A stretch of DNA of 64,000 nt from Macrostomum hystrix (Eukaryota > Animalia > Platyhelminthes), in the NCBI GenBank assembly GCA_950097015.1, contig CATNEN010000026.1, positions 1,240,001-1,304,000 on the forward strand, written 5' to 3'. The translations under genes and the position numbers were made by a program. Shown here piece by piece: positions 4,167 to 41,787 of this stretch. Under the pieces are notes generated by a model. It worked only from the letters and a program-made list of their open reading frames with translations, ran no database searches and was not told the DNA's origin. The number at the start of each line of letters is the position of its first letter. The stretch's first letter is position 1.

Positions 4167-7100
4167 GCCCGCAGTGTGCGAGAGAATAAATTTGATACGC
4201 TAGTAGTATGCCGACATCTCGTACATTTATGTCGACCACCAACTTCGAACAACCATTATTAGCTACCGACTCACGGATATCAATAAACTGGCTTGCGAGA
4301 CGTTTAGAGCTGCCACAAGGTACTCGTCCGTTGAACTGTCCTGATTTTCCGATCCTTTGTTTTCTGTGTTCGAAGAACAACTATTTAGTTTGATAAAATG
4401 CTTAATTATTGTCCCTTGCATATTGTTTGTCTTAATTATTATTCTTACGTATATTTTTCTATCGATGTGTTTTAACCGCTAGATTAAAGTTAATAAGCAA
4501 AGACAATTTGTTTTAAATATGCTTTTGCTGGAAGACAGCTACACATATGGTAAATTTGAGTCAACTAATATCGCCTTGTCCTTGCCTGTTAATATTCCGT
4601 AGCTCAGTTTTTCGTGAGAATCATATGATTAATTATAAATGTAAGCATTAACAAACGCTCAGTTTTTCAATTTTTCAAAACGGTTTAAGATTTACCAATA
4701 CTACCTTAAGGTATGATTATAAGTTGACGGTAAACGAATGTAATTGTCGAGCTATTTGCATACCTCTGGTAGGCAGTTTGTGTTATAGGGCAACGTTTCT
4801 TGCCAATAACAAGGACTACTCGATCAGTAGTTCCTCAGAGAACTACGCGTGTATTTAAAGGACGGAAGTTTGAAACAACTTAATTTACGATTGAGCCAAC
4901 CAAAAAGATCCGAACGCGACAGGACCAAAGTAAGGTTAATATATATTGTTTAACGAAGTGAAATACAGCGAACCAATAACGATCGATATAGCGAAGGAAT
5001 AAAATGATATCGTTTACATTGAAGCATGTACATGCACATGTACATTTAAAAAGTATTGTACGCAGAGAACAGAATACACAGTGCGCGAACACATAAGGAA
5101 AATAAAACTTTGACGCAGCCACCCCAAAACGTCACGCAGCGTGAAGCCAAAGCCTCACGCCACCAAAAGTTTAATTTTGTTATAAGTTTTTTCGGTTATT
5201 TAACTAAAGCTCGATTCAAATGCTCGTAATGCAAGCTGAATACAGTTATTTATAAGGGTTCTATTTATAGAAGTCCTTGGGCTGGGCGTTCGTAAACTGG
5301 AAATGAAGTCTGAGACAATATGTTGACAGACAAGTTAAATGAAGAGATTGGAATCTCAATCACGGATAAGTGGAATTAGATTGCGCACCAAATGACTTTG
5401 TATGAAATTTTAAAATGCTACATTTTAAAATGCCATTCATTACTATTGATGTTAGTAGAGTGTTAAGCCGACTTAATGCGTTACCATAGTTACTGGAACA
5501 CGTAGTATATGCAGGTCCAATAAGTGTAATACATTTTTTTAAAGCTGCGTATGCCGGTTTATTTACTGATTTGCCTTTTATTTGTTAAATGCCTTTGAAC
5601 ATAAGAAAAAAGTCTTAATATTCTTTGTTTGACTATTTTTCCTGTTGCTAAGTACGCTTCAACAATGTGTTGTGAGCTGCGTCTCACGTACAATGACCTT
5701 GCTCCGACCCCCGCGCCTCCCGAGTACTATTGTGAGAACGCTGCCCTGAGTTAGAAGCGAACAATCCATACAATAATAAACTACGCAGCCTGAGCTACAC
5801 TAATTGCCATGAGTGCAACGTTCGATCCCTCCCGGTAAGAAAAGCATTAACGAGTTATTTATTTATCCGTGCTCAAACCTTGTTCCTCTGCCCGACCTCT
5901 GCTGCTGTCAAAAGCTCATCATCATCATCCTTCTCCTCCAGAGTCTTCCCTCGAGTCTGCGAAGCGTCGGTACGCCTCCAGACCGTCATCCACCTCTCTC
6001 TGGGGCTGTCGAGTGGCTACCCGCTCTCTACCCGCTCTATCCCTCCTCTCCCGGCAAGCTTTGGGCGGTCCGTACCCGAACCCCTACTACCGCGTCGGCG
6101 AACTGCCGACGGTACCGATAAACTACAACAATTGATGCGCTGGGACACTGGGATTAAAAGCTCAAAATAAAGTGTAGATTTTTCCGAATTCTAAGTATCA
6201 ACTGCTAGGGGTGAGGTTTGCTTTAGAGATGAAGTTCAATTGTGTTTTGCGCCTACCATATTAGCGTTGCTCTCTCTTTTAGTTTTTTCTCTCCTTTCCC
6301 TCCAACTCCACCTAGTTAGCTCGTAGGCGCTTACTGGGTGGTGATTGGCTAGCCAGGGTTTTTTCCGACCTTGTGCGCTTGTGATTGGCTACGGCCAATT
6401 GGTAAGGCTGCTCTTCCTTCTCCCCATGTGTATTTATGCACAGGCCACGAGAAACTGGTTCTACAAGCGCACTTAAAAAACTAAACGGTTGTTCGAACAC
6501 TGTAAGAGCACTTGCTTCTACTAAATATATCTTACGAGTATAAGCTCATGCAAGCCAGGATTAGCTAATGTTAATGAAAACGTTTTAATATTCAGAATTT
6601 CCACATTTTTCCTACGGGTCTGGGTCTACTGTAGCTCTGTCATTGATAGCGCACTGCTAAAAATTATCTTAAAAATCTCAATAGAGACATTGTGGGTGGC
6701 ATTTTGCTTAGTACAAGTATTAAAGAATGCGAAATTTTGCAAGCGAAGTCACAAAACTTAAGGAGTTTAGCATGCTGGCTAACATTACTGTGCTTTTCAG
6801 TGTTCCTGTGGACTTTATTGCTTGCTTATAGCTGCGTACATTTTATATATTACTAGCTTTTTTTGCCCGTTGTTTTTGGGGCAGAAATTTAAAGCAAAGC
6901 AGTAAGCAATTCACGTCTCTGTATTAACTTTATAGTGAAGGTCACCATTTATTTATTTACTGCATGAATGAAAAGTGAAGAGTTTGTTTAAGGGCGTTTT
7001 AAGTAAAAAATAAGTGAAAAGTTTGTCCAAACAGCCCCCTCTTGATTACTTCTTTAGAAACATGTCTCTTAGCCACTCCTCTATACAGTCAGTGGCAGAT

Positions 7101-7208
7101 CCAGGAATTTTGTTTTGGGGCGGTCTGTCAGGGGTTTGTTTGTCGTTTGTCATTCTTTGTCGCCGATGGGTTTCCAGTGCGAATGTCAATTTGCCTGATG
7201 TTGATGTG

Positions 7209-9236
7209 CTACCCATCCTCTCCGTCCCAGAAAATAAGCGGATACTGCAATGTATCATAGGCTTTGTGCAGCTCAGAAATCCTTTGCAATTGATTGCTTC
7301 GCAGCTGCAGAACAATGTCTCGCTTCTCAAATTCCTGCCCAACAATTTGAATTGCGACATCGTTAACAACTGGTGCGTTATATCTCCTCTCATGCTGGCC
7401 TGCAGGCCGTTTATCAGCACGAATGACTACTCTGTGCTCCTCTGTGTCCCGTGGCAACCTCTCCATGGCAGTTTTAAATTGACGAACATAATTATTTTTC
7501 TCGTGCAGGACTTCCTGTAACTCAAATACAATGTTGGCACGCACTCCTGGAGCGATTCTACATCGGCGCTCAACCTGCTCTTGATGATCTCCCATGAAGT
7601 AGATCTGCAGGAACTTTGGCTCCTCTCCAGGCAGTGGTAGCAATGATCCTATGTCATGGTACACCTGACCTTGGACTTTAAATGCAGGCATGAACCCTGG
7701 CTCACGGACAATACTTTTAGCTCCAAAAGAAGTCATTTGAAAGCAGCTGTTGTAGCACCGGATATTAGACAGAAAGTGCTCAGATTCTTCTGTCTCACCC
7801 AGCAACAGATGCCGAAGGCATGGTGGCAGGTTCTCGTTCAAAGGTTCAAGTATGACCTTTCCGTTGGAACAGCATATGCCTGGAGTTTCGTTGGCCCATC
7901 TTAATGCATGGCAGCGTGCGCATTTGACCGACATTCTCGCCATCGCAAGTTTAGGATGGACACCATAGACAACAGTGGGATCATAACTCAGAGCCGCATT
8001 CAGTGCCCAAGGACGTGGGCCAGCTGGCTGATCAGGTTCGTCAACGTTGGGGTTTGTTGGAGCCGGGGGTGGTCCAACAAATTGGAAGGTCTCAGCGCGT
8101 TCCCTATGTCGCTCTCGATCATCCTGCCGACGCACTTCAGCCTGGTTGGCTGTTTCATTGCGACGGGCCTCGGCAGTCCGGTCTCTGTTCTGTTCTTGGC
8201 GCTGCTGTGTTTGGACTGCAGTCTCATTGCGACGGGCCTCGGCAGTCCGGTCTCTGTCCAGTTCTTGGCGCTGCTGTGTCTGGACTGCAGTCTCATTGCG
8301 ATGGGCCTCGGCAGTCCGGTCTCTGTTCTGTTCTTGGCGCTGCTGTGTCTGGACTGCAGTCTCATTGCGACGGGCCTCGGCAGTCCGGTCTCTGTTCTGT
8401 TCTTGGCGCTGCTGTGTCTGGACTGCAGTCTCATTGCGACGGGCCTCGGCAGTCCGGTCTCTGTCCAGTTCTTGGCGCTGCTGTGTCTGGACTGCAGTCT
8501 CATTGCGACGGGCCTCGGCAGTCCGGTCTCTGTCCAGTTCTTGGCGCTGCTGTGTCTGGACTGCAGTCTCATTGCGATGGGCCTCGGCAGTCGGGTCTCT
8601 GTTCTGTTCTTGGCGCTGCTGTGTCTGGACTGCAGTCTCATTGCGACGGGCCTCGGCAGTCCGGTCTCTGTTCTGTTCTTGGCGCTGCTGTGTCTGGACT
8701 GCAGTCTCATTGCGACGGGCCTCGGCAGTCCGGTCTCTGTCCAGTTCTTGGCGCTGCTGTGTCTGGACTGCAGTCTCATTGCGATGGGCCTCGGCAGTCC
8801 GGTCTCTGTTCTGTTCTTGGCGCTGCTGTGTCTGGACTGCAGTCTCATTGCGACGGGCCTCGGCAGTCCGGTCTCTGTTCTGTTCTTGGCGCTGCTGTGT
8901 CTGGACTGCAGTCTCATTGCGACGGGCCTCGGCAGTTCGCTCTCTGTTAAGCTCTCGTCGCCTATCTACGTCTCTGCCGTGACTGGCTGTAGAACTTATT
9001 GCAGCTCCAGCACTGCTTCCACTGGTGCCTGATGTCTGTGCTCTTGTCCGAGGTCGAAGGTTATAAGGCTGGACTGGCTCAGCTTCATTTTCACTTGAAG
9101 CTGCTTGTGGCTGTGCTGAGGTGCTTGGTCTAGGTACTGCTGTTGTTGCGCCGTCTTCTACTGCATCGTTTGGCCTTGCTGTTGCTCGTCGAGCTGCTTT
9201 AGTCAAGCGACTTAAAAAACTTTTCTTAGGTGGCAT
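7209..9236 (-). pseudogene. Helitron RepHel protein, N-terminal half; truncated
   Basis: Contains CARCHALRWANETPGICCSNGKV, NIRCYNSCFQMTSFGA, FKVQGQVYHDIGSLLP, FLQIYF and YDTLQYPLIFWDGEDG. A TAG then falls where the family has Tyr, and the frame continues HINIRQID before a deletion junction at ~7134. ATG directly follows a TTTCAG acceptor-like site. Confidence 0.88.
8155..8935 (-). repeat. 69-bp coding tandem repeat (~11 copies; RRNETAVQTQQRQEQNRDRTAEA) in the Helitron ORF
   Basis: CGACGGGCC recurs at 8161 and 8230, giving a 69-bp period. The unit encodes 23 aa in frame. Confidence 0.95.
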
Positions 9237-9518
9237 CTGAAAGTTAGAAGTAGTCCGAATGACAGGGGACCTGTGTTGAAAAATCTTTCTCTTATCTTCA
9301 GTGGGAAAGGCTAAGCCTCTATTTTAGCAAAGCACTGTACGCCAGCCTCTCTCTTTCTTCTATCCCAGGCTGGCTGGAGAGAAATATCGACTGGAGAGAC
9401 AGTCTAGGGGTTTGGGCTGTGTACATTCACGGCTTGAAATACAATGTACAGTCTGGGGCTTCGGCGCCCGGGGAAGGGAGGGGGTGGCTGTAATAAAATT
9501 TGGCCCGCAGAGTGGCGG

Positions 9519-9628
9519 CAGTCTATGGCCGCGGGCTAGCCGGCCCCAGCTCATGCGTTTATTATGCGCCTAGCCAGGGTGCCCTCATGGTGAGGTGAGC
9601 TGGGCTAGCCGATCGCAGCTCATGAGCC
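9519..9628 (+). repeat. Left terminal inverted repeat of the giant element
   Basis: CTAG cores at 9536, 9570 and 9605 (offsets 17/51/86 from the end) and the palindrome GCTCATGAGC at 9618-9627, mirrored at the right end. Confidence 0.8.
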
Positions 9629-9723
9629 CAGCCCATGGGCCCAGGGTGCGCTCCTGGTGTGGGCCTCGGATATGGGATAGGAAGGTGACGGGGGGGAGGA
9701 GGAGGGGGAGAGGTTGCCCATGA

Positions 9724-9965
9724 GGGCGGATAGCTCAGTCAGTAAGGTGTCGGACTCTGGATCAGATGGTCCTGGGTTCGACTCCCGACCTAGTCTAGAA
9801 CTATTCGTGCAGCCCTTGGCAAGCTGCTTTGCCCTGATGTGCACACAGTCTACTCAGCTGCAGATGAGTACCGACATTTCGTCGGGTAATAATAATTCTG
9901 GCTGGCGTGGAATAAAGCAGTTCTGTGCGGCAATTCTGTGGGGTTCGGATGCTGCCGATATGTTT
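9724..9965 (+). mobile_element. tRNA-derived SINE
   Basis: tRNA-like head GGGCGGATAGCTCAGTCAGTAAGG...CCTGGGTTCGACTCCCGACC with A and B boxes. It is followed by CCCTTGGCAAG...GTCTACTCAGCTGCAGATGAGTACC, resembling conserved central domains of metazoan SINEs. The 3' end is approximate. Confidence 0.72.
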
Positions 9966-10000
9966 GGAAAAATAAATTCTTTAAGAGTTTTCTTAATTTA

Positions 10001-10960: not shown

Positions 10961-12936
10961 TGGCTGCAGGCTGCAGCTTGTGCTTTCTTATTTTAAGCAA
11001 TGGCCATCGTAGCGATCAAATTCGCAACGCAATATTAGCAACGCAAGCAAATATATCGCGAGCTAGCGAATCGCTCCATTATCTAACGACGGGTCCAGCA
11101 GGTCCCCAAATTTTATCTGCAAAGCTTCAAAAACCAAAAGGGTGAACGTCAATATTACAAATTTATTACAAACTCAGCAAAAGTCAAAATTATTAGCACC
11201 CGTAACGAAAGTCATCGATTTATCGTTGCACCAAACATTCTACTTATTTTTGTCATTGCATGTAATCCATAAAGTTTTAAATAAAGACCAGCAAGGCAAA
11301 AATCATTATTTTTAAAGCATAAAAGTAACTTAAAAGAAAGGTTGAAGCGAAAATAGTTCGCTAAAAGATTTTTTTAAACACATACTGCATAAAAACGGCA
11401 AAACAGCGTTTAAATTTTGTAGGGTACGAAGTGCAATGCCTCACACCAGTATCTAAATGTTTTACTTTGTTTAGAGTTACATAAAGTTTCCGGAACATTT
11501 AACCTTTTCGACAGAAATCAACATGATAAATAATCGACCAATTTATAAATCTAATTGATGCAAAGTCATTGCATTCTGTTGCAAAAGCAGTATAATCGCA
11601 CGAGTTCAACCTACTGAAACATCGATTTAGTTAATTCATCTACAAATATTATATATTTTTAATAAAAGTGTCTGAGCTTTCGTGTTCTGCTACAAAGTAG
11701 GGAAACCGTAAGAATTTCTGGTATATTAGGTCTTAATTTAATAATTCTCGAAAAACCAAGGTATTCCAAATAATTAGCTACGAAACACATTATTTTCCTT
11801 TCTTGAAGATCGGCTCGATATTACCCGCAACTTACGTATGTAAACCGTAACGTACTCGTAGCGTTTGAGTTTAAAAAAACAAAATCGTAATAAAGGTATA
11901 GGCTACTTAATACTGCTTTGAAAAAACAAATAATTATGTTCTTAGACATATACATAAAGAAGGCTCTGCAGATTTTTTTGGCGCGGTTTAAATAATTTCA
12001 GATGCATGTTCGTCGGAGTTGTCCGCCATGTTGTTTTTAGCTTTTTCAAATTTTTATTTTGAACTGAATTTTAATTAATTTAGTAATTTAATTTTCTCTT
12101 TGAATTCAACTGAAAGTGAAAGACAGGTAAATCGGGACAAAAAAGTACAAGATTGTACCAATTGCAATCATTCCACATTACTGTTACTTTTTCTAGATTA
12201 TTGCCACTTTGGTAGCTAATTTCGTTCTTCGTAAATCGTAATTAAGGTTAAAAACAAAAATATTTGTATTGTTTACTTCACTCTTCACTTAGTTTTGGAC
12301 AAATCAGAGTCATTTGCACAAGGTAATTAAAAACTCGATAAATGTCTAAACAATGTCAGTTGGAAAATAACATATGTCGCTATATGGCAAAATTACATGG
12401 TTAATATGATGTAATATAACACTCTAGATAGCTAGTATTGAATAGGAAATATTATCTGACTATCTTTGGCAGGTTAGAAACTAGTTAACTCGGCAGTAAA
12501 CCAGTACTATAGCTAGTGCCTATAAGCATTTACTCATATTTAGTTAACATTGAAGATGGGTTAATCCAAAATTTTGTTAGAGGTTGTGCCAGTGTGTATT
12601 AAATTAGAAACAGTTGTCCGACTATAATATTCACTTTTATTTATTAAGTTCTGCTGCTAGTTTCTTTGCATTTCTTGCTTAACAGTGTACCAAGCTCTGC
12701 AACTTTTTATGAAGCAACAGTCACTAATTTCATTTGGTCTTTAGACCTAGCCTCCTAGCCTACTTCCAGAGTCAAAAAGGTGGCTCTGTGTGCCAGAAAG
12801 AAATTATAAACAATGTAATAAGTGACATGCACCACCAATATAAGTAACTTTAACATTGAGTCAAGTAGGCTTTGGTAAATAGTAAATAAAGTAAATAGTT
12901 AATAGGGCAAGATCTCAAAAAAACTAATGCATACTC

Positions 12937-13370
12937 GGCAATGTTTTACTTCCGTTCGTTATATTATTTTTTCGTTTGAATTGACATGGCTTTGCCGTGA
13001 CTTGACACTTGGATCTATGTCTATGGCAAAATCTGGCAAATATGGGGGAACAGGAAGCTTAGGCACAGAAATTCTGCAGCTGAAGATTTTGTGAAGGCCA
13101 AGCTGCGTCAAATGCATGGCACGAATGCTGCTCTATTCGAAAGCCACCTCAAAGAATTCTTATGGCACTGTCTATACCCCAAGAATAGCTTCGGTGCCCT
13201 CCTCTACTGGATTAGGCACTTACCCGGTTTGAAAGAAGAAAGACTGACCAAGACTTTTCAGAACTGTCTGATCAAACTACAGACTTATTGTTACCGTTAA
13301 ACTTGTTTTTGTCGTTATCTGTCATTTGCAAATGAAAAAATAATATAACGAACGGAAGTAGAACATTGCC
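12937..13370 (+). mobile_element. Non-autonomous Merlin (IS1016/IS1595-related) DNA transposon
   Basis: ~37-bp TIRs GGCAATGTT(T/C)TACTTCCGTTCGTTATATTATTTTTT and a perfect 8-bp TSD GCATACTC (12929-12936, 13371-13378). The internal fragment KAKLRQMHGTNAALFESHLKEFLW resembles the ISXO2/Merlin transposase C-terminus. Confidence 0.85.
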
Positions 13371-13976
13371 GCATACTCTTTGCACATAAAGGCTTCTTTC
13401 CAGTGGACCTTGAACTTAAGATCAATATTTATATCGTAAATAGTGAAATTGAAATCTTGAAATCAATCACTTGAGAAGGTATTCGACTGAGATTAGTGGC
13501 AATCCATTGGAGGATTAGAGAAGTCCATGCTGGTATCAGTATCAGACAGGCTGATCATCTAGGCAGAATAGCTGCAGCTGGACACTGCAGCATGACAGTC
13601 TGGCCCTGGCAAAGCTGAGCAAACTGCCACCCCAAGTCTGCCAATCTTTGTCACATTCCATGGAGTCCATGGGTGGCAGTAATGTGTTAATTTGTGAGAG
13701 TGAGAAAAAGGGATTTGTGTGCAAATTTTTAAGTAAATGTTCAATTCTTTATATTCAAGCAAGTGTATAGAAATGACGCCCAAGTGCAGGTCAGCAATCT
13801 CCACAGACTGTAGTTACATGGCCACAATACTTGTGGGAATATATGTTGAATATAAGTGCTATGATTTCATTATAGAATATATAAAACTTTATAGTATTAA
13901 ATAGAAAACAGTTGTCTGTCTACAATATTAAATACTGTAAACCAATGATTATAAATTACTTTCTCATTTCCAGACA

Positions 13977-16424
13977 ATGTATCGCGGCATCGAACTGAAG
14001 CGTGTTGTCAAAGCTACACTGCAAACTGGCTGTCGTGGGCGACCCAGAAAGATTAAGACAATCATTAGCGGCCGAAATCGAGGCTCAACATCTCGGCGTC
14101 CTGTGTCTGAAACTACTCCTGTTCCAGTGGAAGCTAGCACCGAGAATGATGTCGGTATGCCTGAGTCTTTTGCTCCTACAGTAGAAGATGTTGAATGGGT
14201 AGATTTTGACAGCTTTGCTGAGAAATACAGAGGTAGTTACGAGAAGCATTTTCTCTTAAATCTGTGTTCCTCTTGCTATGAGCACGAAGGTGTATATCGA
14301 TGTGTTACTTGTCGACTTAGCTTATGTGCCAGCTGTAAGAATGAGACGCATAAAAAGTTTTCAGCCCACAAGTTTCTCATATGGAATAAGGAGAGTCTAA
14401 TGTTTCAGGAACTGGATGCTACTCACGATGCTTTTGAAATGTTTTGCTGCGCTTCTAGTAAATTGAATCTGAATGTCTGTGCGGCTACAAAAGTTGACCT
14501 TATAGATCTGGCTGGAAGCGTAAAGGTCATTTTTATTACCTGCGACTCCTGTGATCTTATTGGTGCACTCCTTTCTCAAGGGTTCTTCCCTTGTTGCGAA
14601 GGGTCAAAGCCTGATTCAGATGGGTATGCATTCTTTTCTTTTACCTTTTTGTCCCTGCTAGACAGTTTGTGTATGACTGGGCAGTTGCCTGTTCACAGAG
14701 CGGTCAGTACACTGCTCATTGGGCCAACTCTGGGACAAGGTACATATAATTTGGCTCTTGTAAAAAGCACTTATCAACGCATTCAACGACATGATGTTTT
14801 GCTGCGGTTTCGCCACCTGCAAATGGCCTCAGCAAAATGGCCAAATAATTGTCTTCTCTGTCCAGATAATCACGCTGTGCGCAAAACTGTTGTCTGTGCA
14901 GATGCTCTATTTGGTTGGCAGCGCTTTAAAGCCAGGGGGCGTACACAACTGGAAATACCATCAGATGGTCGTCCATTACCTACGCCGCTTGTCTATGTAG
15001 ATATTAAAGCGGATGTGCCAAAAAATCGAGCAGAGGAACAGAATTGTCCTAATTGGAAGGCCGGTGCTCATGAACCATTAAGCCGTGAGCAGAGACATGA
15101 TGTCACGGGTTTCTTTGGATTATTCTGTCGTCACAATCGCCTTTTGTGTGGCTCAAATATCACAACTGGTGGAGAAAAGTTTTGCTACCTGGAACAGTGC
15201 CTTGAACACTTTCTGCGAAACGTCAAAGTGTCTAAGGAATTACTTGTCGTATATGACGTGGGTAAGTTTATTATTATTTTATAAAATGCATACAATCTAT
15301 GAAATACTGTTGCTTGTGTACAGTTATATGACAACATGACTTACTCTTTATCCCAATTCACAGGCTGTCGCGTATCCAGCCGGGTTAAATCCGCTATTGC
15401 GAAGTCTGGTGCCAACATTCAAGCGAGTAGCTGTGCAATAAACGCTTTTCATGCTCTTGGTCACCTGCCCAGTTGTCAAAAAAAGTTTTCTGTTCGCGTT
15501 ACTCCAGGCGCAGGTCTATGCGATGGAGAGAATACTGAGCGAGCCTGGTCTCAACTCAGGCCGTTCGGTAAGTTTTTAAAGTACATGCGGAAAGACCGAC
15601 GAGCACAATACATGGCGCATATTCTATACTTCTTTAATGCACAACAGCTTCTTAGCGCTTCTGGGTGGTTTACACAACGTATTAAGCTTATGGTAGGTGC
15701 GGGAAAAAGCATTCTAAGTGAACTAAAAGAGCTACAAAGCCAGTCTGCGATTTTGCAGCACTCGGGGGTCCGAAATGACAGTCTGGTCATCTCTGAGGAT
15801 GAAATTTTGGATTTAGGCTCCCAATGGTATGAAGATTCCCTCCGAGTAGCTGTACACAACTCGGAAGATGATATCCTATGTGAGCTACGCGCTCTTGCAG
15901 TGCACAGAGATCATTGGAGTAAACAGGTTGGTAAGTCAGTTGGCCAAAGTCAAACCAGAATGTGCTTGCGAAAGGTTAAAAGTTATGCATCCGACATGAA
16001 AAAACTCTACGCTCGTCTTCCAATTGAAGACAGAGCTTCTTTCGATGAATATAAAAAACCGCGTAGTGCGAAATATGAACATTTGTCTGGAACCGACCTT
16101 TCCATCCGATTTCGTCAGCGGGCTATAGACGTCAGTAACAAATATAAACGCCTAAAAGAAGAAGCGCATATTATTTCAGATGAGTGGGTTGACCTTCAGG
16201 TTAATTTGCAGAGCCTCTGTGATGACTTAGCGAATCAGCCGGGCTTAGCCGCTCAATTTCGGGAATTGTTTAGAAGACTGCTTGAAGATGTTGCAAGTAA
16301 AAGCGTGACTGATGCTGTAAAATATCTTCTTGCGAATAAATTCTCCCTCAGCACACTGAGTCAGAGCGCTAATGAAGCGGTTGCTTCAGAAGATTCGGAG
16401 TCTTCTGATAGCGACTCCGATTAA
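13977..16424 (+). CDS. CxC-domain KDZ (Kyakuja-Dileera-Zisupton) transposase, 781 aa, join(13977..15261,15364..16424)
   Basis: Cys cluster CSSC..YRCVTC...LCASC...H..FSAH and GFFP. KDZ motifs: CLLCP, VCADALF..QRF, DVTGFFGLFCRH, GEKFCY, VVYDVG|CR, FHALGHLPSCQ, GAGLCDGENTERAWSQL. A phase-1 intron (GTAAG...CACAG) joins the two ORFs in frame (1285+1061 nt = 782 codons). Confidence 0.9.
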
Positions 16425-16495
16425 GTATCCAACCAGTGTACTGATGATTCCACCGTTACTTGTGTTTTTAATTGAAGTCAAGCGCTGCCTTGTAA

Positions 16496-17174
16496 AGTCA
16501 CTCTGCACCTACTTTTGTGTGGGTGCTGTGAAGCGTTAAGTTTAAGATCGCTAAAATTAATACCATTAAGCCCAAAATTTGGACACATTTCTTTCAACTA
16601 GCAAATTTTTTGCAGGTCACTTTGCACATGCAATACAATGTGCTGTGAAGCGTTAAGTTTAAGAACGCTAAAATTAATACCAGTAAGCCCAAAGTTTGGA
16701 CACATATTTCTTTCAACTAGCAAAATATTTACAGGTCACTTTGCACATGCAATTCAATGTGCTGTGAAGCGCTACATTTTAAAGCGCTATGAGCCCATGT
16801 GTCAGCCTTCTCGCGGCGGACTCGTTGAGCGCGAATAAAATCTGCTAATTACCGTGCGCTGCCAATCTTACCGTGCATGTTTGCACTATCCAGCGGACTG
16901 GCAGTGTACTTACGTTAGCTGTTTTTATTCGTGGGACTAATGACACTATTAAATTCGTTCATTTATCAGCTTTTCCGTTCAATTCCGTTTTATTATTATT
17001 ATATAGCTCACAGTTTCATTGTCTGTCAAATAAATGGAGGGGCTCCTAAACAGTGTTTCTCGTTCTTATTTTTTCATTGCTTGCCGTGCCTGATAAACAT
17101 GTTTTCCTTTTTTAGCATTTACATACTTGCGCCTATATACGTCACCGATTTCAGCGAAACGCAGGCAACTTAAA
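16496..17174 (+). repeat. Leader cassette copy 1 (with an internal ~140-bp duplication), upstream of the finger-SET gene
   Basis: Nearly identical to 18341-18902 and 19758-20200. Starts GTCACTCTGCACCTACTTTTGTGTGGG and ends TTTCAGCGAAACGCAGGCAACTTAAA. Confidence 0.9.
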
Positions 17175-17222
17175 TAAACTCTTTAAAAAATCAAAATTCA
17201 GATTTCAAATTCAAAAGACAGC

Positions 17223-18235
17223 ATGCCCACTGATAAGCTCGATTGTCCGTTATGTCTTCCTGGTTTATCTGCCTATTCGGCCAGACCTGACAGGCTCGCT
17301 CTGCATATTGAAACGCATCATCCAAACGCGAAAGGGAAGACGGAATGCATCATTCAATATCTACGTTGGTCGAAGAAGGCCGATGCAAAATTGTGCCAGC
17401 TATGCGATACATTCTATGTACATTTGCGGCAGCACTATAAGCTGATTCACACCATCGAATTCCGGCGACTTAACACTTTGCTGACAGGTCAACCAGCCAT
17501 GCGACTCGCGCGAAAGCGTGGTGTTAAACGTTTTGGTGAAATATTCTGGTGGTTTACTTCCAATCAGCCGTTGCCAAACTATCCGTCCTCAGATGGCGAC
17601 TGTGTTGGAAAGCTGGAAGAACAAAGGTAATTAATTTGTGAAGGGCATGTCACGATCTCATTTAAAGCTTAGTTACGTAAAATGCAAACTGCCTGTGCCA
17701 TCTGTATTTTCTAAGTCTTGTCAACACTTCCCACAGGCACTGCGAATCTTCTGCTGGCCAACGATCATGCATAGATGTCTACAGGAAAAGTTCAAATTTC
17801 GTCCCAGCCAAGGTTTTAGTGAAGCCTTCTGGTGAGAAGGGTCTCGGTATTTTTGCTGGTGAACTAATTAGAGCTGATTCATTCGTGTGCTTCTATGGTG
17901 GCACCGTAATATCTAGAAAACAAGGACTCGCCAGAGAGCAGGAGAGGGCATCTAAAGGCGAGTCACCTTGTTTTGCGTTTTTCTTTTTTTATGGCTCCCA
18001 ATCGCTTTGCGAAGATGCTACTGATAGTTTTTCCCTTGGTCGGTTTATTAATCACAGTCGGTTGACTCCAAATCTAATGCCAAGGGCGATACCACCATGT
18101 AAAGAAATCGGACGGAACGTCTGCAGGATCGCTTTTTTTGCTATTCGGGACATTCTAGAAGGGCAAGAATTGCTCTTCGATTATTCTGAAACTGACGAAG
18201 AGTGTCTAAAGAGGTTTCCCTGGCTGCAATCTTAA
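17223..18235 (+). CDS. C2H2-like zinc-finger + SET-domain (PR-Set7/SETD8-like) protein, 284 aa, join(17223..17626,17785..18235)
   Basis: Fingers CPLC..H.ETHH and CQLC..HLRQHYKLIH. A phase-2 intron (AG|GTAATT...CTACAG|G) gives an in-frame join. SET motifs: KGLGIFA, FYGG, CEDAT, LGRFINHS, GQELLFDY and the terminal FPWL typical of SETD8/PR-Set7. Confidence 0.8.
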
Positions 18236-18340
18236 AAGTTCAAAAAATTGTACCAACTAGTCACTGCTAATCATTTTGAATTTGTTGCACATGCGTCAGA
18301 CAAATTTCTTCAAAACTTGTCGCATAAAACATTACAGCAG

Positions 18341-18902
18341 GTCACTCTGCACCTACTTTTGTGTGGGTGCTGTGAAGCGTTAAGTTTAAGAACGCTAAAA
18401 TTAATACCAGTAAGCCCAAAGTTTGGACACATATTTCTTTCAACTAGCAAAATATTTACAGGTCACTTTGCACATGCAATTCAATGTGCTGTGAAGCGCT
18501 ACATTTTAAAGCGCTATGAGCCCATGTGTCAGCCTTCTCGCGGCGGACTCGTTGAGCGCGAATAAAATCTGCTAATTACCGTGCTCTGCCAATCTTACCG
18601 TGCATGTTTGCACTATCCAGCGGACTGGCAGTGTACTTACGTTAGCTGTTTTTATTCGTGGGACTAATGACACTATTAAATTCGTTCATTTATCAGCTTT
18701 TCCGTTCAATTCCGTTTTATTATTATTATATAGCTCACAGTTTCATTGTCTGTCAAATAAATGGAGGGGCTCCTAAACAGTGTTTCTCGTTCTTATTTTT
18801 TCATTGCTTGCCGTGCTTGATAAACATGTTTTCCTTTTTTAGCATTTACATACTTGTGCCTATATACGTCACCGATTTCAGCGAAACGCAGGCAACTTAA
18901 AA
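18341..18902 (+). repeat. Leader cassette copy 2
   Basis: Near-identical to copy 1; ends ~40 bp before the ATG at 18943. Confidence 0.9.
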
Positions 18903-18942
18903 AAAACTTTAAACTTCAAACTGTAAACACACAAAACTCATC

Positions 18943-19677
18943 ATGCCCAACAAACACGCGAAAGTGTCCTGTCTTGTCTGTTCCAATTGGACTGGTAGAT
19001 CCTACATGCTTTGGAGGCATTGCGAGAAAAGGCACCCCGCTCTGGAGGATGACAGGATTCAGGCGATGATTGACTTCGCGAAGGCGACTTCAAAAGCGAA
19101 GCCGGTGTGTCTCTGTCCGATATGCGGGGCTCTGATTTCTCACCAAAGAGCGCATTTTAAGAGATGCCACGTACCTGAATATGGCTCTACATACCGCCGC
19201 AAAGCCCTCTCGGGTCGTGCGGCTGTCCTGAAATTACGCGAATCAGGTTCGCGGCGTGTAGCAGAACTTCACAAACTTGCTACAGAAGAAAAGCATCCAC
19301 TCCAATACATGGAACTTGAGTTCGCTGCTAGTCAGCTATCTATTCTGGTTGAGATGTACAAGGATATCGGCGAGGTACAAATTACATCAGCAACTAGCCA
19401 AGAGACGAGTGCGTCAACAAAACTTCCCGCAGAACAGCAGCAGCAGGAAGAGCGCTGCAACTCTTCTGAAGGTGCTCCTAAAAGTCCTAAACCTACGCCA
19501 GAAACTCATCGAGTTCCAGCTAAAATCTGTCGAAACCCATTACCATTTGTGATTCCTCCAAGAGTCCCTTATTGCGTCAAACCCTTACCGCCTATTGTCT
19601 TGCGTAAATCTGCTACCAACTTGACCCGATATAACCCGAAAATTCCCACCTCGTCTCCCATAAAAATTGCTACCTGA
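18943..19677 (+). CDS. Zinc-finger protein paralogous to the N-terminus of the 17223 gene, with a Pro/Lys-rich tail and no SET domain
   Basis: MP..., CLVC..H.EKRHP, CPICG..SHQRAHFKRCH and EY...LSG.AA..LR..G.RR.AE align motif for motif with 17223-17626. Confidence 0.65.
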   Translation: MPNKHAKVSCLVCSNWTGRSYMLWRHCEKRHPALEDDRIQAMIDFAKATSKAKPVCLCPICGALISHQRAHFKRCHVPEYGSTYRRKALSGRAAVLKLRESGSRRVAELHKLATEEKHPLQYMELEFAASQLSILVEMYKDIGEVQITSATSQETSASTKLPAEQQQQEERCNSSEGAPKSPKPTPETHRVPAKICRNPLPFVIPPRVPYCVKPLPPIVLRKSATNLTRYNPKIPTSSPIKIAT

Positions 19678-19757
19678 GGTCTTCCTGTTGGAACAAAATA
19701 CCATACCACCCCTATCCCATGGAAAAATTGGTATATCGACAGAGCCAATTACAGCAA

Positions 19758-20200
19758 GTCACTCTGCACCTACTTTTGTGTGGGTGCTGTGAAGCGTTAA
19801 GTTTAAGAGCGCTAAAATGAATACCAGTGAGGCCAAATTTTGGATACAATTCATTCAACTAGCAAAATATTTACAGGTCACTTTGCACATGCAATTCAAT
19901 GTGCTGTGAAGCGCTACGTTTTAAAGCGCTATGAGCCCATGTGTCAGCCTTCTCGCGGCGGACTCGTTGAGCGCGAATAAAATCTGCTAATTACCGTGCG
20001 CTGCCAATCTTACCGTGCATGTTTGCACTATCCAGCGGACTGGCAGTGTACTTACGTTAGCTGTTTTTATTCGTGGGACTAATGACACTATTAAATTCGT
20101 TCATTTATCAGCTTTTCCGTTCAATTCCGTTTTATTATTATTATATAGCTCACAGTTTCATTGTCTGTCAAATAAATGGAGGGGCTCCTAAACAGTGTTT
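19758..20200 (+). repeat. Leader cassette copy 3 (3'-truncated, no downstream ORF recognised)
   Basis: Same sequence as copies 1 and 2 up to CCTAAACAGTGTTT, then diverges. Confidence 0.88.
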
Positions 20201-20470
20201 CGCGTTTTCGTTTTTTAATTGCTTGTTTTTTAGATGCGCTTTCTTTCTGCTCATTAGTTGGCTGTGCAGGGAACAACTAGGACAAATGGAGATAGATGTG
20301 CATTTGAGAATAGACTGCCTGCTTTATACAATTATATGCATGGCAGATCAATGTCCTTATTAGCGTTTATATATTAGCGTTCACGCCTTCATTTAGGGTC
20401 TAGCTTTAATTGTCAACGTTTCAAACTTCAATCTCGAATAAATTTCAGGCCAGCATCACTTCCATTGAAA

Positions 20471-20515: not shown

Positions 20516-20964
20516 ATTGGGATGACGTGCGCGATGTCAACATGATGACGTGCGCGAGCATTCAACACAATGGAAATGACGATCCATACAATTTTTTAGG
20601 CGGTGTTTCTGGTCTTTCAACCGTTGTGACCAATATTTGAAGAAGCATCTTGCTAACGATATTTTAGCTTTTATAACTATTTGCACAATTAAAGGTACGT
20701 GGCTACGCACTTCTACGCCTTTAGCCTTGTCTAATGTCATTTTTCAATTCCCTCCAGTCGTCCAAGGCGTTTTGTTGTTATGCGAACTCGGCCAATCTGA
20801 CTTCATAATTGCTTCATATGCGTTCATATGCATACAAGTGTGAATGCTCATATGCGTGTGTACACCTTTCGTGTCTGCTTGCCTGCAATCCTACTTGTGC
20901 ATGTATTTGACTTACCTATAGTCATTACACTTAGCTAGAGTAATTTAGCCCAGGTGTGGCAACA

Positions 20965-21880
20965 ATGGTCAGAGGAGAGCTAGAGTCAAACTGTTCAGAA
21001 TATGTTCCGATGACTAAATTATTCAGTTTTCCCTGGTAGTCATGCAATTTCTTGGATGGTCAGAGGAGAGCTAGAGTCAAACTGTTCAGAATATGTTCCG
21101 ATGACTAAATTATTCAGTTTTCCCTGGTAGTCATGCAATTTCTTCAATGGTCAGAGGAGGGCTAGAGTCAAACTGTTCAGAATATGTTCCGATGACTAAA
21201 TTATTCAGTTTTCCCTGGTAGTCATGCAATTTCTTGGATGGTCAGAGGAGAGCTAGAGTCAAACTGTTCAGAATATGTTCCGATGACTAAATTATTCAGT
21301 TTTCCCTGGTAGTCATGCAATTTCTTGGATGGTCAGAGGAGAGCTAGAGTCAAACTGTTCAGAATATGTTCCGATGACTAAATTATTCAGTTTTCCCTGG
21401 TAGTCATGCAATTTCTTCAATGGTCAGAGGAGAGCTAGAGTCAAACTGTTCAGAATATGTTCCGATGACTAAATTATTCAGTTTTCCCTGGTAGTCATGC
21501 AATTTCTTGGATGGTCAGAGGAGAGCTAGAGTCAAACTGTTCAGAATATGTTCCGATGACTAAATTATTCAGTTTTCCCTGGTAGTCATGCAATTTCTTC
21601 AATGGTCAGAGGAGGGCTAGAGTCAAACTGTTCAGAATATGTTCCGATGACTAAATTATTCAGTTTTCCCTGGTAGTCATGCAATTTCTTGGATGGTCAG
21701 AGGAGAGCTAGAGTCAAACTGTTCAGAATATGTTCCGATGACTAAATTATTCAGTTTTCCCTGGTAGTCATGCAATTTCTTGGATGGTCAGAGGAGAGCT
21801 AGAGTCAAACTGTTCAGAATATGTTCCGATGACTAAATTATTCAGTTTTCCCTGGTAGTCATGCAATTTCTTCAATGGTC
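20965..21880. repeat. 91-bp tandem repeat x10
   Basis: ATGGTCAGAGGAGAGCTAGAG recurs at 20965 and 21056; units are nearly identical. Confidence 0.97.
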
Positions 21881-22249
21881 GTGCTCCCTTGCAAACGAGC
21901 AGCGGAGTGAGAGGAGAGAGTTCTGAAGTTCTGAACGCGTTTGACAATGATAAAATATCAAACTCTAATACCTGCTTTCTTTATGCTCACTGTGCATGCA
22001 CTGTATGTGTTTTTACGTGAGGGTCTGTACTTTGTTCAATTAATGTTTCTGTCTAACTAGGACTTTTCACCAATTCTTTTCCGTGTCAATCTTCAGGGAA
22101 AATACATAAGCTAATTTATCAAAACATATCAGCGCATCTCATTGGCAAAAATTGTGCCGCACAGGCACGGCATAGGTGACCTGCTGCAAGGTATACTGAC
22201 TAAAATTATTATTATGTTATTATTATTACTTCTTTCTTGGAATCACAGG

Positions 22250-22516
22250 GTGAGGTGACAGAGAAGAGGGTGAGGTGACAGAGGAGAGAGTGGGGTGACA
22301 GAGAGGAGAGAGTGAGGGCACAGAGGAGAAAGTGAGGGCACAGAGGAGAAAGTGAGGGCACAGAGGAGAAAGTGAGGGCACAGAGGAGAAAGTGAGGGCA
22401 CAGAGGAGAAAGTGAGGGCACAGAGGAGAAAGTGAGGGCACAGAGTGGAGAAAGTGAGGGCACAAAGGAGAAAGTGAGGGCACAGAGTGGAGAAAGTGAG
22501 GGCACAGAGAGGAGAA
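22250..22516. repeat. ~20-bp purine-rich minisatellite (GAGAAAGTGAGGGCACAGAG)n
   Basis: Direct tandem copies are visible. Confidence 0.95.
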
Positions 22517-22632
22517 AGTTAACTTTGATGAATTTCGATGGGATTTGATTCCCCGTATTCTGGGATAGACGTAGAAGCGATCCCTGTCGAAATCCGGGGT
22601 CAATAAGTAAGCCTGCGGCGTCGCATCACACA

Positions 22633-25600
22633 GACTATACTTAATTATTACTATTGTAGCCAGATTTATAAACTTGAACTGGAGCTTGTGGGCACCTATT
22701 GCCGTTTAGGAAAATTCAAGAAACCAACAATTGCAGTGCCACGCTTGGCCTCAACTACATGATTTTCGCACTACAAAGACTATACTTAATTACTATTGTA
22801 GCCCGATTTATAAACTTGAACTGGAGCTTGTGGGCACCTATTGCCGTTTAGGAAAATTCAAGAAACCAACAATTGCAGTGCCACGCTTGGCCTCAACTAC
22901 ATGATTTTCGCACTACAAAGACTATACTTAATTACTATTGTAGCCAGATTTATAAACTTGAACTGGAGCTTGTGGGCACCTATTGCCGTTTAGGAAAATT
23001 CAAGAAACCAACAATTGCAGTGCCACGCTTGGCCTCAACTACATGATTTTCGCACTACAAAGACTATACTTAATTACTATTGTAGCCAGATTTATAAACT
23101 TGAACTGGAGCTTGTGGGCACCTATTGCCGTTTAGGAAAATTCAAGAAACCAACAATTGCAGTGCCACGCTTGGCCTCAACTACATGATTTTCGCACTAC
23201 AAAGACTATACTTAATTACTATTGTAGCCAGATTTATAAACTTGAACTGGAGCTTGTGGGCACCTATTGCCGTTTAGGAAAATTCAAGAAACCAACAATT
23301 GCAGTGCCACGCTTGGCCTCAACTACATGATTTTCGCACTACAAAGACTATACTTAATTACTATTGTAGCCAGATTTATAAACTTGAACTGGAGCTTGTG
23401 GGCACCTATTGCCGTTTAGGAAAATTCAAGAAACCAACAATTGCAGTGCCACGCTTGGCCTCAACTACATGATTTTCGCACTACAAAGACTATACTTAAT
23501 TACTATTGTAGCCAGATTTATAAACTTGAACTGGAGCTTGTGGGCACCTATTGCCGTTTAGGAAAATTCAAGAAACCAACAATTGCAGTGCCACGCTTGG
23601 CCTCAACTACATGATTTTCGCACTACAAAGACTATACTTAATTACTATTGTAGCCAGATTTATAAACTTGAACTGGAGCTTGTGGGCACCTATTGCCGTT
23701 TAGGAAAATTCAAGAAACCAACAATTGCAGTGCCACGCTTGGCCTCAACTACATGATTTTCGCACTACAAAGACTATACTTAATTACTATTGTAGCCAGA
23801 TTTATAAACTTGAACTGGAGCTTGTGGGCACCTATTGCCGTTTAGGAAAATTCAAGAAACCAACAATTGCAGTGCCACGCTTGGCCTCAACTACATGATT
23901 TTCGCACTACAAAGACTATACTTAATTACTATTGTAGCCAGATTTATAAACTTGAACTGGAGCTTGTGGGCACCTATTGCCGTTTAGGAAAATTCAAGAA
24001 ACCAACAATTGGTGCCACGCTTGACCTCAACTACATGATTTTCGCACTTCAAAGACTATACTTAATTACTATTGTAGCCAGATTTATAAACTTGAACTGG
24101 AGCTTGTGGGCACCTATTGCCGTTTAGGAAAATTCAAGAAACCAACAATTGCAGTGCCACGCTTGGCCTCAACTACATGATTTTCGCACTACAAAGACTA
24201 TACTTAATTACTATTGTAGCCAGGTTTATAAACTTGAACTGGAGCTTGTGGGCACCTATTGCTGTTTAGGAAAATGCAAGAAACCAACAATTGGTGCCAC
24301 GCTTGACCTCAACTACATGATTTTCGCACTTCAAAGACTATACTTAATTACTATTGTAGCCAGATTTATAAACTTGAACTGGAGCTTGTGGGCACCTATT
24401 GCTGTTTAGGAAAATGCAAGAAACCAACAATTGGTGCCACGCTTGGCCTCAACTACATGATTTTCGCACTTCAAAGACTATACTTAATTACTATTGTAGC
24501 CAGATTTATAAACTTGAACTGGAGCTTGTGGGCACCTATTGCTGTTTAGGAAAATGCAAGAAACCAACAATTGGTGCCACGCTTGACCTCAACTACATGA
24601 TTTTCGCACTTCAAAGACTATACTTAATTACTATTGTAGCCAGATTTATAAACTTGAACTGGAGCTTGTGGGCACCTATTGCCGTTTAGGAAAATTCAAG
24701 AAACCAACAATTGCAGTGCCACGCTTGGCCTCAACTACATGATTTTCGCACTACAAAGACTATACTTAATTACTATTGTAGCCAGGTTTATAAACTTGAA
24801 CTGGAGCTTGTGGGCACCTATTGCTGTTTAGGAAAATGCAAGAAACCAACAATTGGTGCCACGCTTGACCTCAACTACATGATTTTCGCACTTCAAAGAC
24901 TATACTTAATTACTATTGTAGCCAGATTTATAAACTTGAACTGGAGCTTGTGGGCACCTATTGCCGTTTAGGAAAATTCAAGAAACCAACAATTGCAGTG
25001 CCACGCTTGGCCTCAACTACATGATTTTCGCACTTCAAAGACTATACTGAATTACTATTGTAGCCAGATTTATAAACTTGAACTGGAGCTTGTGGGCACC
25101 TATTGCTGTTTAGGAAAATGCAAGAAACCAACAATTGGTGCCACGCTTGACCTCAACTACATGATTTTCGCACTTCAAAGACTATACTTAATTACTATTG
25201 TAGCCAGATTTATAAACTTGAACTGGAGCTTGTGGGCACCTATTGCCGTTTAGGAAAATTCAAGAAACCAACAATTGCAGTGCCACGCTTGGCCTCAACT
25301 ACATGATTTTCGCACTACAAAGACTATACTTAATTACTATTGTAGCCAGGTTTATAAACTTGAACTGGAGCTTGTGGGCACCTATTGCTGTTTAGGAAAA
25401 TGCAAGAAACCAACAATTGGTGCCACGCTTGACCTCAACTACATGATTTTCGCACTTCAAAGACTATACTTAATTACTATTGTAGCCAGATTTATAAACT
25501 TGAACTGGAGCTTGTGGGCACCTATTGCCGTTTAGGAAAATTCAAGAAACCAACAATTGCAGTGCCACGCTTGGCCTCAACTACATGATTTTCGCACTTC

Positions 25601-26157
25601 AAAGACTATACTGAATTACTATTGTAGCCAGATTTATAAACTTGAACTGGAGCTTGTGGGCACCTATTGCTGTTTAGGAAAATGCAAGAAACCAACAATT
25701 GGTGCCACGCTTGACCTCAACTACATGATTTTCGCACTTCAAAGACTATACTTAATTACTATTGTAGCCAGATTTATAAACTTGAACTGGAGCTTGTGGG
25801 CACCTATTGCTGTTTAGGAAAATGCAAGAAACCAACAATTGGTGCCACGCTTGACCTCAACTACATGATTTTCGCACTTCAAAGACTATACTTAATTACT
25901 ATTGTAGCCAGATTTATAAACTTGAACTGGAGCTTGTGGGCACCTATTGCTGTTTAGGAAAATGCAAGAAACCAACAATTGGTGCCACGCTTGACCTCAA
26001 CTACATGATTTTCGCACTTCAAAGACTATACTTAATTACTATTGTAGCCAGATTTATAAACTTGAACTGGAGCTTGTGGGCACCTATTGCTGTTTAGGAA
26101 AATGCAAGAAACCAACAATTGGTGCCACGCTTGACCTCAACTACATGATTTTCGCAG
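22633..26157. repeat. 142/140-bp satellite, ~25 copies
   Basis: GACTATACTTAATTACTATTGTAGCC recurs at 22778 and 22920. The variants TTGCAGTGCC (142 bp) and TTGGTGCC (140 bp) give a 282-bp dimer period in the middle of the array. Confidence 0.97.
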
Positions 26158-40458: not shown

Positions 40459-40757
40459 GACATGGGCACCTAAACTTGGCTTACCTGTCAGTTCTTATTT
40501 GAGCTAATAAAAAAGGTTTCTATTTAACAATTCTAGCTAGTATAGGATATAGAATTAGATTTAAAGTTTTGACTCGACGAGCTCTTTACTATTCGAGTTT
40601 TGGTGGGAAGAGGAAAAACAGCTCGTTCCCCTTTGTCCCCCGCTCAAATAGGGATGTATGGCACCATCGTCTAGTTCGTTCCCAAGTTCGCGTAAACAAC
40701 CCCTCCCAGCCAACCACGCTTCATCATGGGGTTCCCACGCTTCACGTTCCCACAGGG

Positions 40758-40868
40758 AGCTCATGAGCTGCACTCGTCTAGCCGGACTCATGGCACGGTG
40801 AGGTGACCTGGGCTAGCCGTCTAATTTTTACCGTGAGCTGAGGCCGGCTAGTCCACGGCCGTTAGGTG
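40758..40868 (-). repeat. Right terminal inverted repeat of the giant element
   Basis: CTAG cores at 40848, 40813 and 40778 (offsets 17/52/87 from the end) and GCTCATGAGC at 40759-40768. Confidence 0.8.
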
Positions 40869-41056
40869 GTGGCGGAGGGGAGTTGGGGTGGCTGTCCTCG
40901 GAAAACAAAAAGTGACTCACTTTGAGATGATGCAGCTTTGCTCTGGATTGAGTAGAGATGTTCAAAATTGACAGCATTATTTGAAAACATGTAAAGTGTA
41001 AGTGGATCAAATTTGGAGAAAATCTGACAAAGTGGGGCGACGATATGTCGAATTGA
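40869..41056 (-). mobile_element. Proximal fragment of the interrupted minus-strand Helitron
   Basis: Inverted copy of ~41359-41546. It continues across the insertion into 9518->6853. Confidence 0.85.
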
Positions 41057-41787
41057 TATGCATTCGTACATTTTGAAATATGTTCAAAGTATTTGAAGTA
41101 TGAAATATGTAGTATATACGAGTATATACGAGTATATACGAAATCTATATATATAAAAGTGAAAACTCTGTCTGTGTGTGTGTGTGTGTGCAACCTTTTG
41201 TCTTTATAGACGCCGAAACCGCTCAACCAAATCGCACCAAACTTTGCACATACCTAAAACCACCTACGCTGAGTGCAATAGGCTACTCAAATTCCCGAAA
41301 AATCATTTCCTTCCTGCTCAAAAAGGCAAAAAACTGCTCAAAAATCGTCAAAAAATCACTCAATTCGACATATCGTCGCCCCACTTTGTCAGATTTTCTC
41401 CAAATTTGATCCACTTACACTTTACATGTTTTCCAACAATGCTGTCAATTTTGAACATCTCTACTCAATCCAGAGCAAAGCTGCATCATCTCAAAGTGAG
41501 TCACTTTTTGTTTTCCGAGGACAGCCACCCCAACTCCCCTCCGCCACTCTGCGGGCCAAATTTTATTACAGCCACCCCCTCCCTTACCCGGGCGCCGAAG
41601 CCCCAGACTGTACATTGTATTTCAAGCGGTGAATGTACACAGCCCAAACCCCTAGACTGTCTACTGGCCCCCAAGCAGCACTGAGACTGAGTGCGGTGAG
41701 TGCGGTGGCGTCCCAGTGCGCAGGGCTCTCCGGTCGATATTTCTCTCCAGCCAGCCTGGGATAGAAGAAAGAGAGAGGCTGGCGTTG

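Follow-up and report, generated by a model that had tools for sequence, protein, structure and literature searches.

A finger-SET gene with a SET8-type domain is carried by a Kyakuja-like KDZ transposon in Macrostomum hystrix and is predicted to encode a methyltransferase

Some transposons of fungi and oomycetes are known to encode epigenetic enzymes of their own. The fungal KDZ transposons (Kyakuja, Dileera and Zisupton) carry TET/JBP dioxygenase genes; among them, Kyakuja elements generate a 7-bp target duplication, have 5′-CA..TG-3′ termini and are said to be without terminal inverted repeats (PMC12730594). In the oomycete Phytophthora, HarbingerS and MuDR transposons are described as encoding SET genes (Kojima and Jurka 2014, as cited in PMC12730594). 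Our literature search returned no paper describing a SET8-type enzyme in a DNA transposon of an animal, nor any on animal KDZ elements with SET genes.

Here we describe such a combination in a 64,000-nucleotide stretch of the flatworm Macrostomum hystrix, the whole of which we call the window. It contains a gene in which an exon with two putative zinc fingers is joined to an exon with a SET domain (the finger-SET gene), downstream of a KDZ transposase gene (Table 1). An earlier note, made from the letters of the window, had proposed that the gene is borne by a transposon and lies ~800 bp from the transposase on the same strand. Both points hold: the gene is multi-copy and lies inside ends defined by a 7-bp duplication and five empty sites, and the transposase ends at 16424, 798 nt 5′ of the ATG at 17223, on the same strand. 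The KDZ profile (PF18758) matches both coding blocks of the transposase, at 38.6 and 59.9 bits, and there are weak matches to the B-box and CxC1 profiles.

Table 1. Features of the finger-SET gene and of the KDZ element that contains it (positions in the window)
Feature	Position	Strand	Basis
Left 7-bp target-site duplication, GTGGCGG	9512-9518	.	sequence read and empty sites
Whole KDZ (Kyakuja-like) transposon, 31,350 bp, 5′-CA..TG-3′	9519-40868	+	end matches, inverted repeat, empty sites
Left imperfect subterminal inverted repeat	9519-9699	+	aligns with reverse complement of 40702-40868
MITE-like insertion inside element, 43-nt inverted arms	12936-13371	.	in four copies, missing from two
KDZ transposase, two coding blocks (13977-~15258 and ~15324-16424) with candidate short intron between	13977-16424	+	Pfam
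Leader cassette 1, contains trans-splice acceptor of SET gene	16495-17187	+	repeats and contigs
AG trans-splice acceptor of SET mRNA	17153-17154	+	SL prefix on contigs of three runs
Exon 1 ORF	17223-17630	+	program ORF list; ATG at 17223
Exon 1 coding part (two C2H2-like fingers and basic helical region)	17223-17626	+	ORF, paralogue alignment, model
Intron, 110 nt, GT..AG	17627-17736	+	joint in contigs of runs X3, X4, X5
Exon 2 coding part (SET8-like SET and flanking helices, ends FPWLQS-stop)	17737-18235	+	Pfam, PDB sequence matches, contigs, model
Exon 2 ORF	17819-18235	+	program ORF list
Finger-only paralogue ZnF2, 244 aa, behind leader cassette 2	18943-19677	+	ORF and paralogue alignment
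Tandem arrays inside element, units of 91 bp, 20 bp and 142 bp	20872-26156	.	self-repeats
Right imperfect subterminal inverted repeat	40702-40868	-	genome search and alignment
Right 7-bp target-site duplication, GTGGCGG	40869-40875	.	sequence read and empty sites

Six public sequencing runs were found to contain the finger-SET stretch. In four runs, all from one study, 87% of the words of the stretch are present, which is the value expected with the intron alone removed. Three of these runs were compared with the window, and each gave a single contig of 1113-1123 nt (depth 11-13) in which 17154-17624 is joined to 17735-18330, with a junction called as skipping 110 nt between GT..AG (cut +2); this places the joint at 17626/17737 and makes 17627-17736 the intron. 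The earlier note had predicted a junction at 17626/17785. Its donor was right (GT at 17627), while its acceptor, 17784/17785, has to be moved 48 nt upstream to 17736/17737 in the contigs of all three runs; the frame stays the same, 16 residues are added, and the finger-SET protein is 300 aa long. The zinc-finger/SET fusion that the note had proposed is also borne out, with exon 1 and its two putative fingers spliced to the SET exon 2.

Every contig is headed by 16 nt, ACTCAATTTATTGCAT, that are absent from the window and are attached at the AG at 17153-54 in all three runs. Followed by GGT, the same sequence occurs exactly 20 times in the genome, in arrays at ~11.6-kb spacing on contigs C15, C17 and C42, and the spliced leader (SL) RNA gene (L024:1380-1640) has CCGTAAAGACGGTCTCTTACTGCGAAGACTCAATTTATTGCATG immediately before GTAAG. 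The published trans-spliced leader of M. lignano is CCGTAAAGACGGTCTCTTACTGCGAAGACTCAATTTATTGCATG, letter for letter (PMC5173321). Intron removal and the SL prefix together identify the finger-SET transcript as a mature, cis- and trans-spliced mRNA; the RNA nature of the runs, whose record does not say RNA, is itself deduced from the missing intron and the SL. The gene is element-borne, transcribed, cis-spliced and SL-trans-spliced. One feature of the mRNA counts against the reading of the gene that we favour below: the AUG at the end of the SL starts an out-of-frame frame of 97 codons (17155-17445) that crosses the start codon of the SET gene.

The acceptor lies in a leader cassette that is repeated nearly identically at 18331-18913 (cassette 2) and 19748-20225 (cassette 3), so that cassettes 1, 2 and 3 stand before the finger-SET gene, a finger-only gene and an ORF-less stretch, respectively. 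Cassettes 1 and 2 have an identical trans-splice acceptor context, CACCGATTTCAG/CGAAAC, ~60-70 nt 5′ of the ATG. The stretch after cassette 3 is also covered by transcript contigs, at higher depth.

Exon 2 matches the Pfam SET profile (PF00856) at 58.7 bits against a cut-off of 22.4 (E 8.5e-16), and the SETD8 landmarks listed in the earlier note are all found in the sequence, as CEDAT, GRFINHS, ELLFDY and a C-terminal FPWLQS. The cofactor and catalytic motifs are complete (GLGIFA 170-175, FYGG 187-190, GRFINHS 236-242 and ELLFDY 279-284), and the invariant columns Y53, G55, H106, N112, E144 and Y149 of alignment A2 are retained. Pre-SET and post-SET Cys clusters are absent, and the C-terminus lies just past PWL. 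Among PDB sequences the top match is CpSET8 from Cryptosporidium (4LDG, 3e-19); 13 distinct human SETD8 sequences match at 1.7e-14 to 5e-13, and EZH2 comes behind them at 2.8e-11. An AlphaFold model of the SET part, built on 31 relatives, has a pLDDT of 86.6, and its best 18 Foldseek matches are all SET8 (18/18), with a TM of ~0.8 across 166 columns, the two flanking helices among them. Sequence matches to the PDB and a structural search with the predicted fold thus both place SET8 first, in agreement with the likeness to SET8/PR-Set7 that had been noted. A word-index protein search with the SET part gave zero matches; an exhaustive search gave 2640, of which the named ones are SETD8, set-1 and trematode KMT5A. 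Judged by its motifs and its predicted fold, the C-terminal half comprises an entire SET domain of the SET8/KMT5A type, and we infer that the finger-SET protein is an active lysine methyltransferase.

At the position of the Phe/Tyr switch, the window protein has Phe282 (codon 18176-18178), which aligns with Tyr334 of SETD8, giving ELLFDY where SETD8 has ELLYDY. ELLFDY is also the motif of the engineered SETD8 Y334F crystal forms 3F9W/X/Y, and 3F9X contains an H4 peptide with dimethyl-lysine. The earlier note was correct about the residue itself; the special status that it gave the Phe does not stand. The M. lignano orthologue has ELLYDY, and among 160 SET8-like relatives the switch residue is Tyr in 81 and Phe in 50, for which reason we do not read the Phe as an adaptation of the element. 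From this distribution it is a lineage-level variant and no hallmark of the element's enzyme. Since the switch residue varies between species, the product state is no fixed property.

To place the SET domain, we compared it with the host's own KMT5A. With trematode KMT5A as query, the genome (220 Mb in 42 contigs) has one strong match, at C1:7767641-7768375 (E 6e-52, residues 144-382), in a gene whose motif is ELLYDY; the element SET is matched by the same query at E 2e-20 and aligned only over residues 248-382, the SET part. The N-terminal region typical of KMT5A is missing from the finger-SET protein, which has the finger module there instead, and identity of the element SET to the host and trematode KMT5A proteins reaches only 36-40%. 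A tree built from 160 SET8-like domains joins the window protein to a M. lignano protein as its sister (support 98); the pair lies within a 27-row clade (SH-aLRT 90) that also holds further Macrostomum paralogues and unnamed proteins from environmental samples, whereas host and trematode KMT5A fall outside it. Constraining the element SET to group with the host KMT5A costs 40.9 lnL units, a borderline result (AU p 0.051) that neither cleanly rejects the grouping nor favours it. With a separate single-copy orthologue in the host and a different clade in the tree, the element SET does not behave as an orthologue of animal KMT5A. This disposes of one possibility that the earlier note had raised against its own reading, namely that the gene is the host's single-copy orthologue. 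The word 'captured' in the note, if taken as an origin from the host, finds no support in the tree, which separates the element SET from host KMT5A (AU p 0.05).

The genome also contains a second SET8-like family, of at least 15 copies, all on contig C1 (L040-L054; for example at 3999791-4000198, 14166285-14166692 and 18151899-18152306). Its members have frames of ~190 aa that are 29-34% identical to the window SET by tblastn (31-34% in another search), read TFDY, with Phe at the switch, and end in NPWLRD. Neither a KDZ gene nor a finger exon was detected within 1.5 kb of them.

The N-terminal half contains two putative fingers, with ligands C8, C11, H28 and H33 in finger 1 and C58, C61, H71 and H76 in finger 2. 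Across eight paralogues C8, C11, R21, H28, H33, C58, C61 and H71 are invariant, and a basic helical stretch follows. The same two-finger module is common to the finger-SET protein and the finger-only paralogue ZnF2. A model of the module (pLDDT 77) has two beta-beta-alpha units and long helices. Pfam and NCBIfam searches with the finger exon gave nothing useful, with no Pfam match in this protein, and the finger module of paralogue P0006 has C2H2 Pfam matches that are sub-threshold only. A Foldseek search with the finger model gave no match below E 3.6, and its weak list is rich in C2H2-DNA complexes. Because Pfam is silent and no Foldseek match is significant, DNA binding by the fingers is put forward as a prediction.

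These properties bear on what the enzyme may act upon. The main rival to H4K20 as substrate accepts the enzyme as real and element-borne and supposes that it may methylate something else: the transposase, the protein of the finger-only gene, or a host factor in repair or replication. The fingers would then contact protein or RNA instead of targeting DNA. Non-histone substrates exist for human SETD8. Such an account would fit the position of the SET domain in a clade separate from canonical KMT5A and its identity of only 36-40% to the host and trematode proteins. It fits less well with the SET8 fold, which is predicted with high confidence and is complete, including the two flanking helices by which the H4 groove is shaped, and is best matched by H4-peptide complexes. 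The fingers can be read both ways: they are without a significant structural neighbour among DNA-binding proteins, yet their C2H2 pattern is invariant across eight paralogues. Weighing these points, we regard a non-H4K20 substrate as unlikely.

The best relative of the finger-SET protein is the M. lignano protein BOX15_Mlig001681g4 (P0002; PAA66912.1 and three identical entries), which has 300 aa, is 61% identical and is annotated as a hypothetical or SET domain-containing protein. Its gene lies ~720 bp downstream of a gene for an 808-aa KDZ protein, on the same strand, and the M. lignano order is KDZ, finger-SET, finger-only paralogue, as in the window. Between the two species the KDZ transposase is 51-56% identical, the finger-SET protein 61-62% and the finger-only paralogue 39%; no further conservation was detected over the rest of the 31-kb element (21 kb compared). 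The M. lignano intron measures 96 nt against 110 nt in the window and interrupts the same codon position. For the finger-SET gene dN is 0.33 and pS is 0.77, with synonymous sites saturated, which indicates purifying selection.

At another M. lignano locus, a KDZ gene of greater divergence (38-44% identity) is followed by a finger-only gene and the finger-SET gene P0006, and the window genome has matching paralogues (L035 and L038) with a finger exon 5′ of a SET exon. The co-occurrence with KDZ genes that the earlier note had put forward as a check was found in M. lignano, in two element lineages. To judge by these comparisons, purifying selection has maintained the gene beside KDZ in no fewer than two element lineages and two species. 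A KDZ neighbour was also sought on the contigs of the clade members P0093, P0012 and P0007 and none was found, so the module is evidenced inside Macrostomum only.

Several relatives from elsewhere have different surroundings. The contigs of P0012 and P0007 are gene-dense and come from environmental samples. Gene-dense environmental contigs (L063 and L065) encode short stand-alone SET8-like proteins of the same weakly supported clade, and their neighbours (TBP, Evr1/Alr, ankyrin and RING) suggest giant viruses. We also examined and set aside the gene model 'set-1' of Holothuria leucospilota (P0001; L061, CM055961.1): it is a 62-kb array of at least 10 SET half-domains at ~3-kb spacing, with no KDZ or finger exon.

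Both ends of the element could be defined. Subterminal inverted repeats of ~110-170 bp, ~74% identical, stand at the two ends; a genome search with a right-end probe returned the inverted match of 40759-40860 to 9527-9627 at 74%, and in the alignment the ends are in register, with CAGTCTATGG... at the left, ...CCGTTAGGTG at the right and the termini CAGTC...AGGTG. The right-end probe matched 20 places in the genome, all of which (20/20) end at window position 40868/40869, and the left-end probe matched 18 places at full length. Because the element sits in a copy of another repeat, the other copies of that repeat serve as paralogous empty sites. In five of them (on C34, C38 twice, C39 and C31), the counterparts of 9397-9518 and 40869-41056 adjoin each other with an overlap of exactly 7 bp, which confirms 9519-40868 as the boundaries of the element.

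Eight copies of the 1013-bp finger-SET gene, all at least 98.5% identical, lie on contigs C26, C25, C7 and C1. The element copies are collinear with the window and 99.9% identical across 11-16 kb. The presence of identical copies on different contigs shows that the element is recently or currently active, and the gene moves with the transposase. A MITE-like insertion that is found in four copies and is missing from two marks a subfamily that moved after gaining it. Eight of the ~18-20 element copies retain the finger-SET gene; as about half are without it, the gene is dispensable in cis for mobilisation. In its coding sequence, four of the eight copies are identical, two differ by nothing but missense changes, one is interrupted by two nonsense codons and one has frameshifts, leaving six intact.

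Some other features of the element and its surroundings deserve mention. Three shorter copies of ~18-25 kb (C5:1432457-1457990, C1:12584830-12603237 and C1:14073179-14094259) have both ends and no match to the SET gene; they are probably internal-deletion derivatives. A ~257-bp repeat in the left part of the element (9723-9979) recurs, with 97-98% identity, at more than 200 candidate positions elsewhere in the genome, and ARAGORN found no tRNA in it. The element is inserted at the edge of a foldback, MITE-like repeat (40869-41547, arms of ~188 nt, more than 370 candidate genome copies), and another such repeat lies just beyond the left end of the C7 copy. To the left of the window element lies a high-copy repeat (6840-9518, ~800 candidates) with a minus-strand ORF of 675 aa (7209-9236) that has no Pfam match; an inverted piece of this repeat recurs at 41541-41785. 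Immediately outside the element, an ORF at 41716-42387 has a Pif1 helicase 2B domain (E 1.9e-19) and is probably a Helitron-type remnant. Farther away, the ORF at 59667-60881 encodes a CNOT1 CAF1-binding domain (E 2e-77) and is an ordinary host gene.

The state of the copies could also be taken to mean that the gene is a passenger in decay: a piece of host sequence, once captured, that hitch-hikes with the element and has no present function. The differences among genomic copies are mostly non-synonymous, two copies are broken and the gene is missing from many element copies; decay of this kind, however, is the neutral, post-insertion decay expected of any transposon copy. A passenger would hardly have retained the three-gene order and the intron position in M. 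lignano at ~60% protein identity, nor would it be expected to have a dN of 0.33 against saturated synonymous sites, catalytic motifs that are all intact, and an expressed, correctly processed transcript. We therefore consider a decaying passenger very improbable. It is just as hard to believe that segmental duplication spread a family of host genes which came to lie near KDZ by chance, for although most copies are on contig C1, with C1a and C1b 111 kb apart, the C26, C25 and C7 copies are 99.9% identical with different flanks, all copies have a common end base, and the 7-bp duplication and five empty sites contradict it for the window copy.

Taken together, the likely reading is that an active, Kyakuja-like KDZ transposon of the cut-and-paste kind carries the finger-SET gene as an accessory, and that this gene encodes a predicted finger-guided methyltransferase. 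We suggest that the finger module, which is common with the finger-only gene, would direct the enzyme either to particular DNA sites or to the transposition complex. The likeliest substrate would be H4K20, and Phe282 may permit dimethylation in the window species. The enzyme could then determine how chromatin is marked locally, either on the element's copies or where the element excises and inserts, and the purpose might be self-regulation or repair signalling.

A bolder and distinctly speculative version, which we think has some chance of being right and a better one of being wrong, would see in these KDZ elements an animal equivalent of the KDZ-TET/JBP elements of fungi. On that view, a sequence-targeted H4K20 methyltransferase would mark the element's own copies, perhaps at the internal tandem arrays or the element ends; the finger-only partner would compete with it or guide it; and the mark would control silencing, replication timing or break repair. 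If true, a giant DNA transposon would encode an epigenetic system for its own control.

These results have implications beyond this locus. They place an old association between a transposon and an epigenetic enzyme in an animal, in two species, and they make it possible to ask directly whether a mobile element writes histone marks for its own benefit. Because the sister species M. lignano has the same module and transgenesis has been reported for it, a bench test is possible. In addition, the window and M. lignano enzymes form a natural Phe/Tyr pair at the product-specificity switch for biochemistry.

Comparison with known systems shows both what is familiar and what is different about this gene. 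The nearest counterpart is the M. lignano protein P0002, with the same length of 300 aa, finger-SET architecture and intron position, which differs in its Tyr at the switch. Human SETD8/KMT5A/PR-Set7 (1ZKK, 5TEG) resembles the element enzyme in its fold and N- and C-flanking helices (TM 0.8, for the predicted model), in the GxG, Y-x-G, NHS and ELLxDY motifs, in having no Cys-rich post-SET region and in ending right after PWL; the element enzyme is nevertheless multi-copy and transposon-borne, has a two-finger N-terminus and a natural Phe in place of Tyr334, and is not an orthologue. CpSET8 (4LDG), the best sequence match among solved structures, also has ELLFDY; in contrast, it is the product of a protist host gene with another architecture and no transposon link. 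In SETMAR (3BO5), a SET domain and a transposase likewise share one locus. There the logic is reversed, a mariner transposase having been captured by a primate host SET gene, and SETMAR is single-copy and immobile and has a different SET subfamily.

Among transposons, the Phytophthora HarbingerS and MuDR elements are similar, as described in the citing source, in being DNA transposons with a SET histone methyltransferase; they belong to other transposase superfamilies and to an oomycete host. The parallel with fungal KDZ-TET/JBP elements that the earlier note had drawn proved apt, as the termini and the 7-bp duplication match those of Kyakuja (PMC12730594). With the fungal KDZ elements the element in the window has in common a KDZ transposase and, beside it, a passenger gene for an epigenetic enzyme, and with Kyakuja the 7-bp duplication (here GTGGCGG) and CA..TG termini; it differs in having imperfect subterminal inverted repeats, a length of 31 kb and long tandem arrays. 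Where the fungal elements carry a DNA-base dioxygenase, the passenger here is predicted to be a protein lysine methyltransferase, and the host is an animal.
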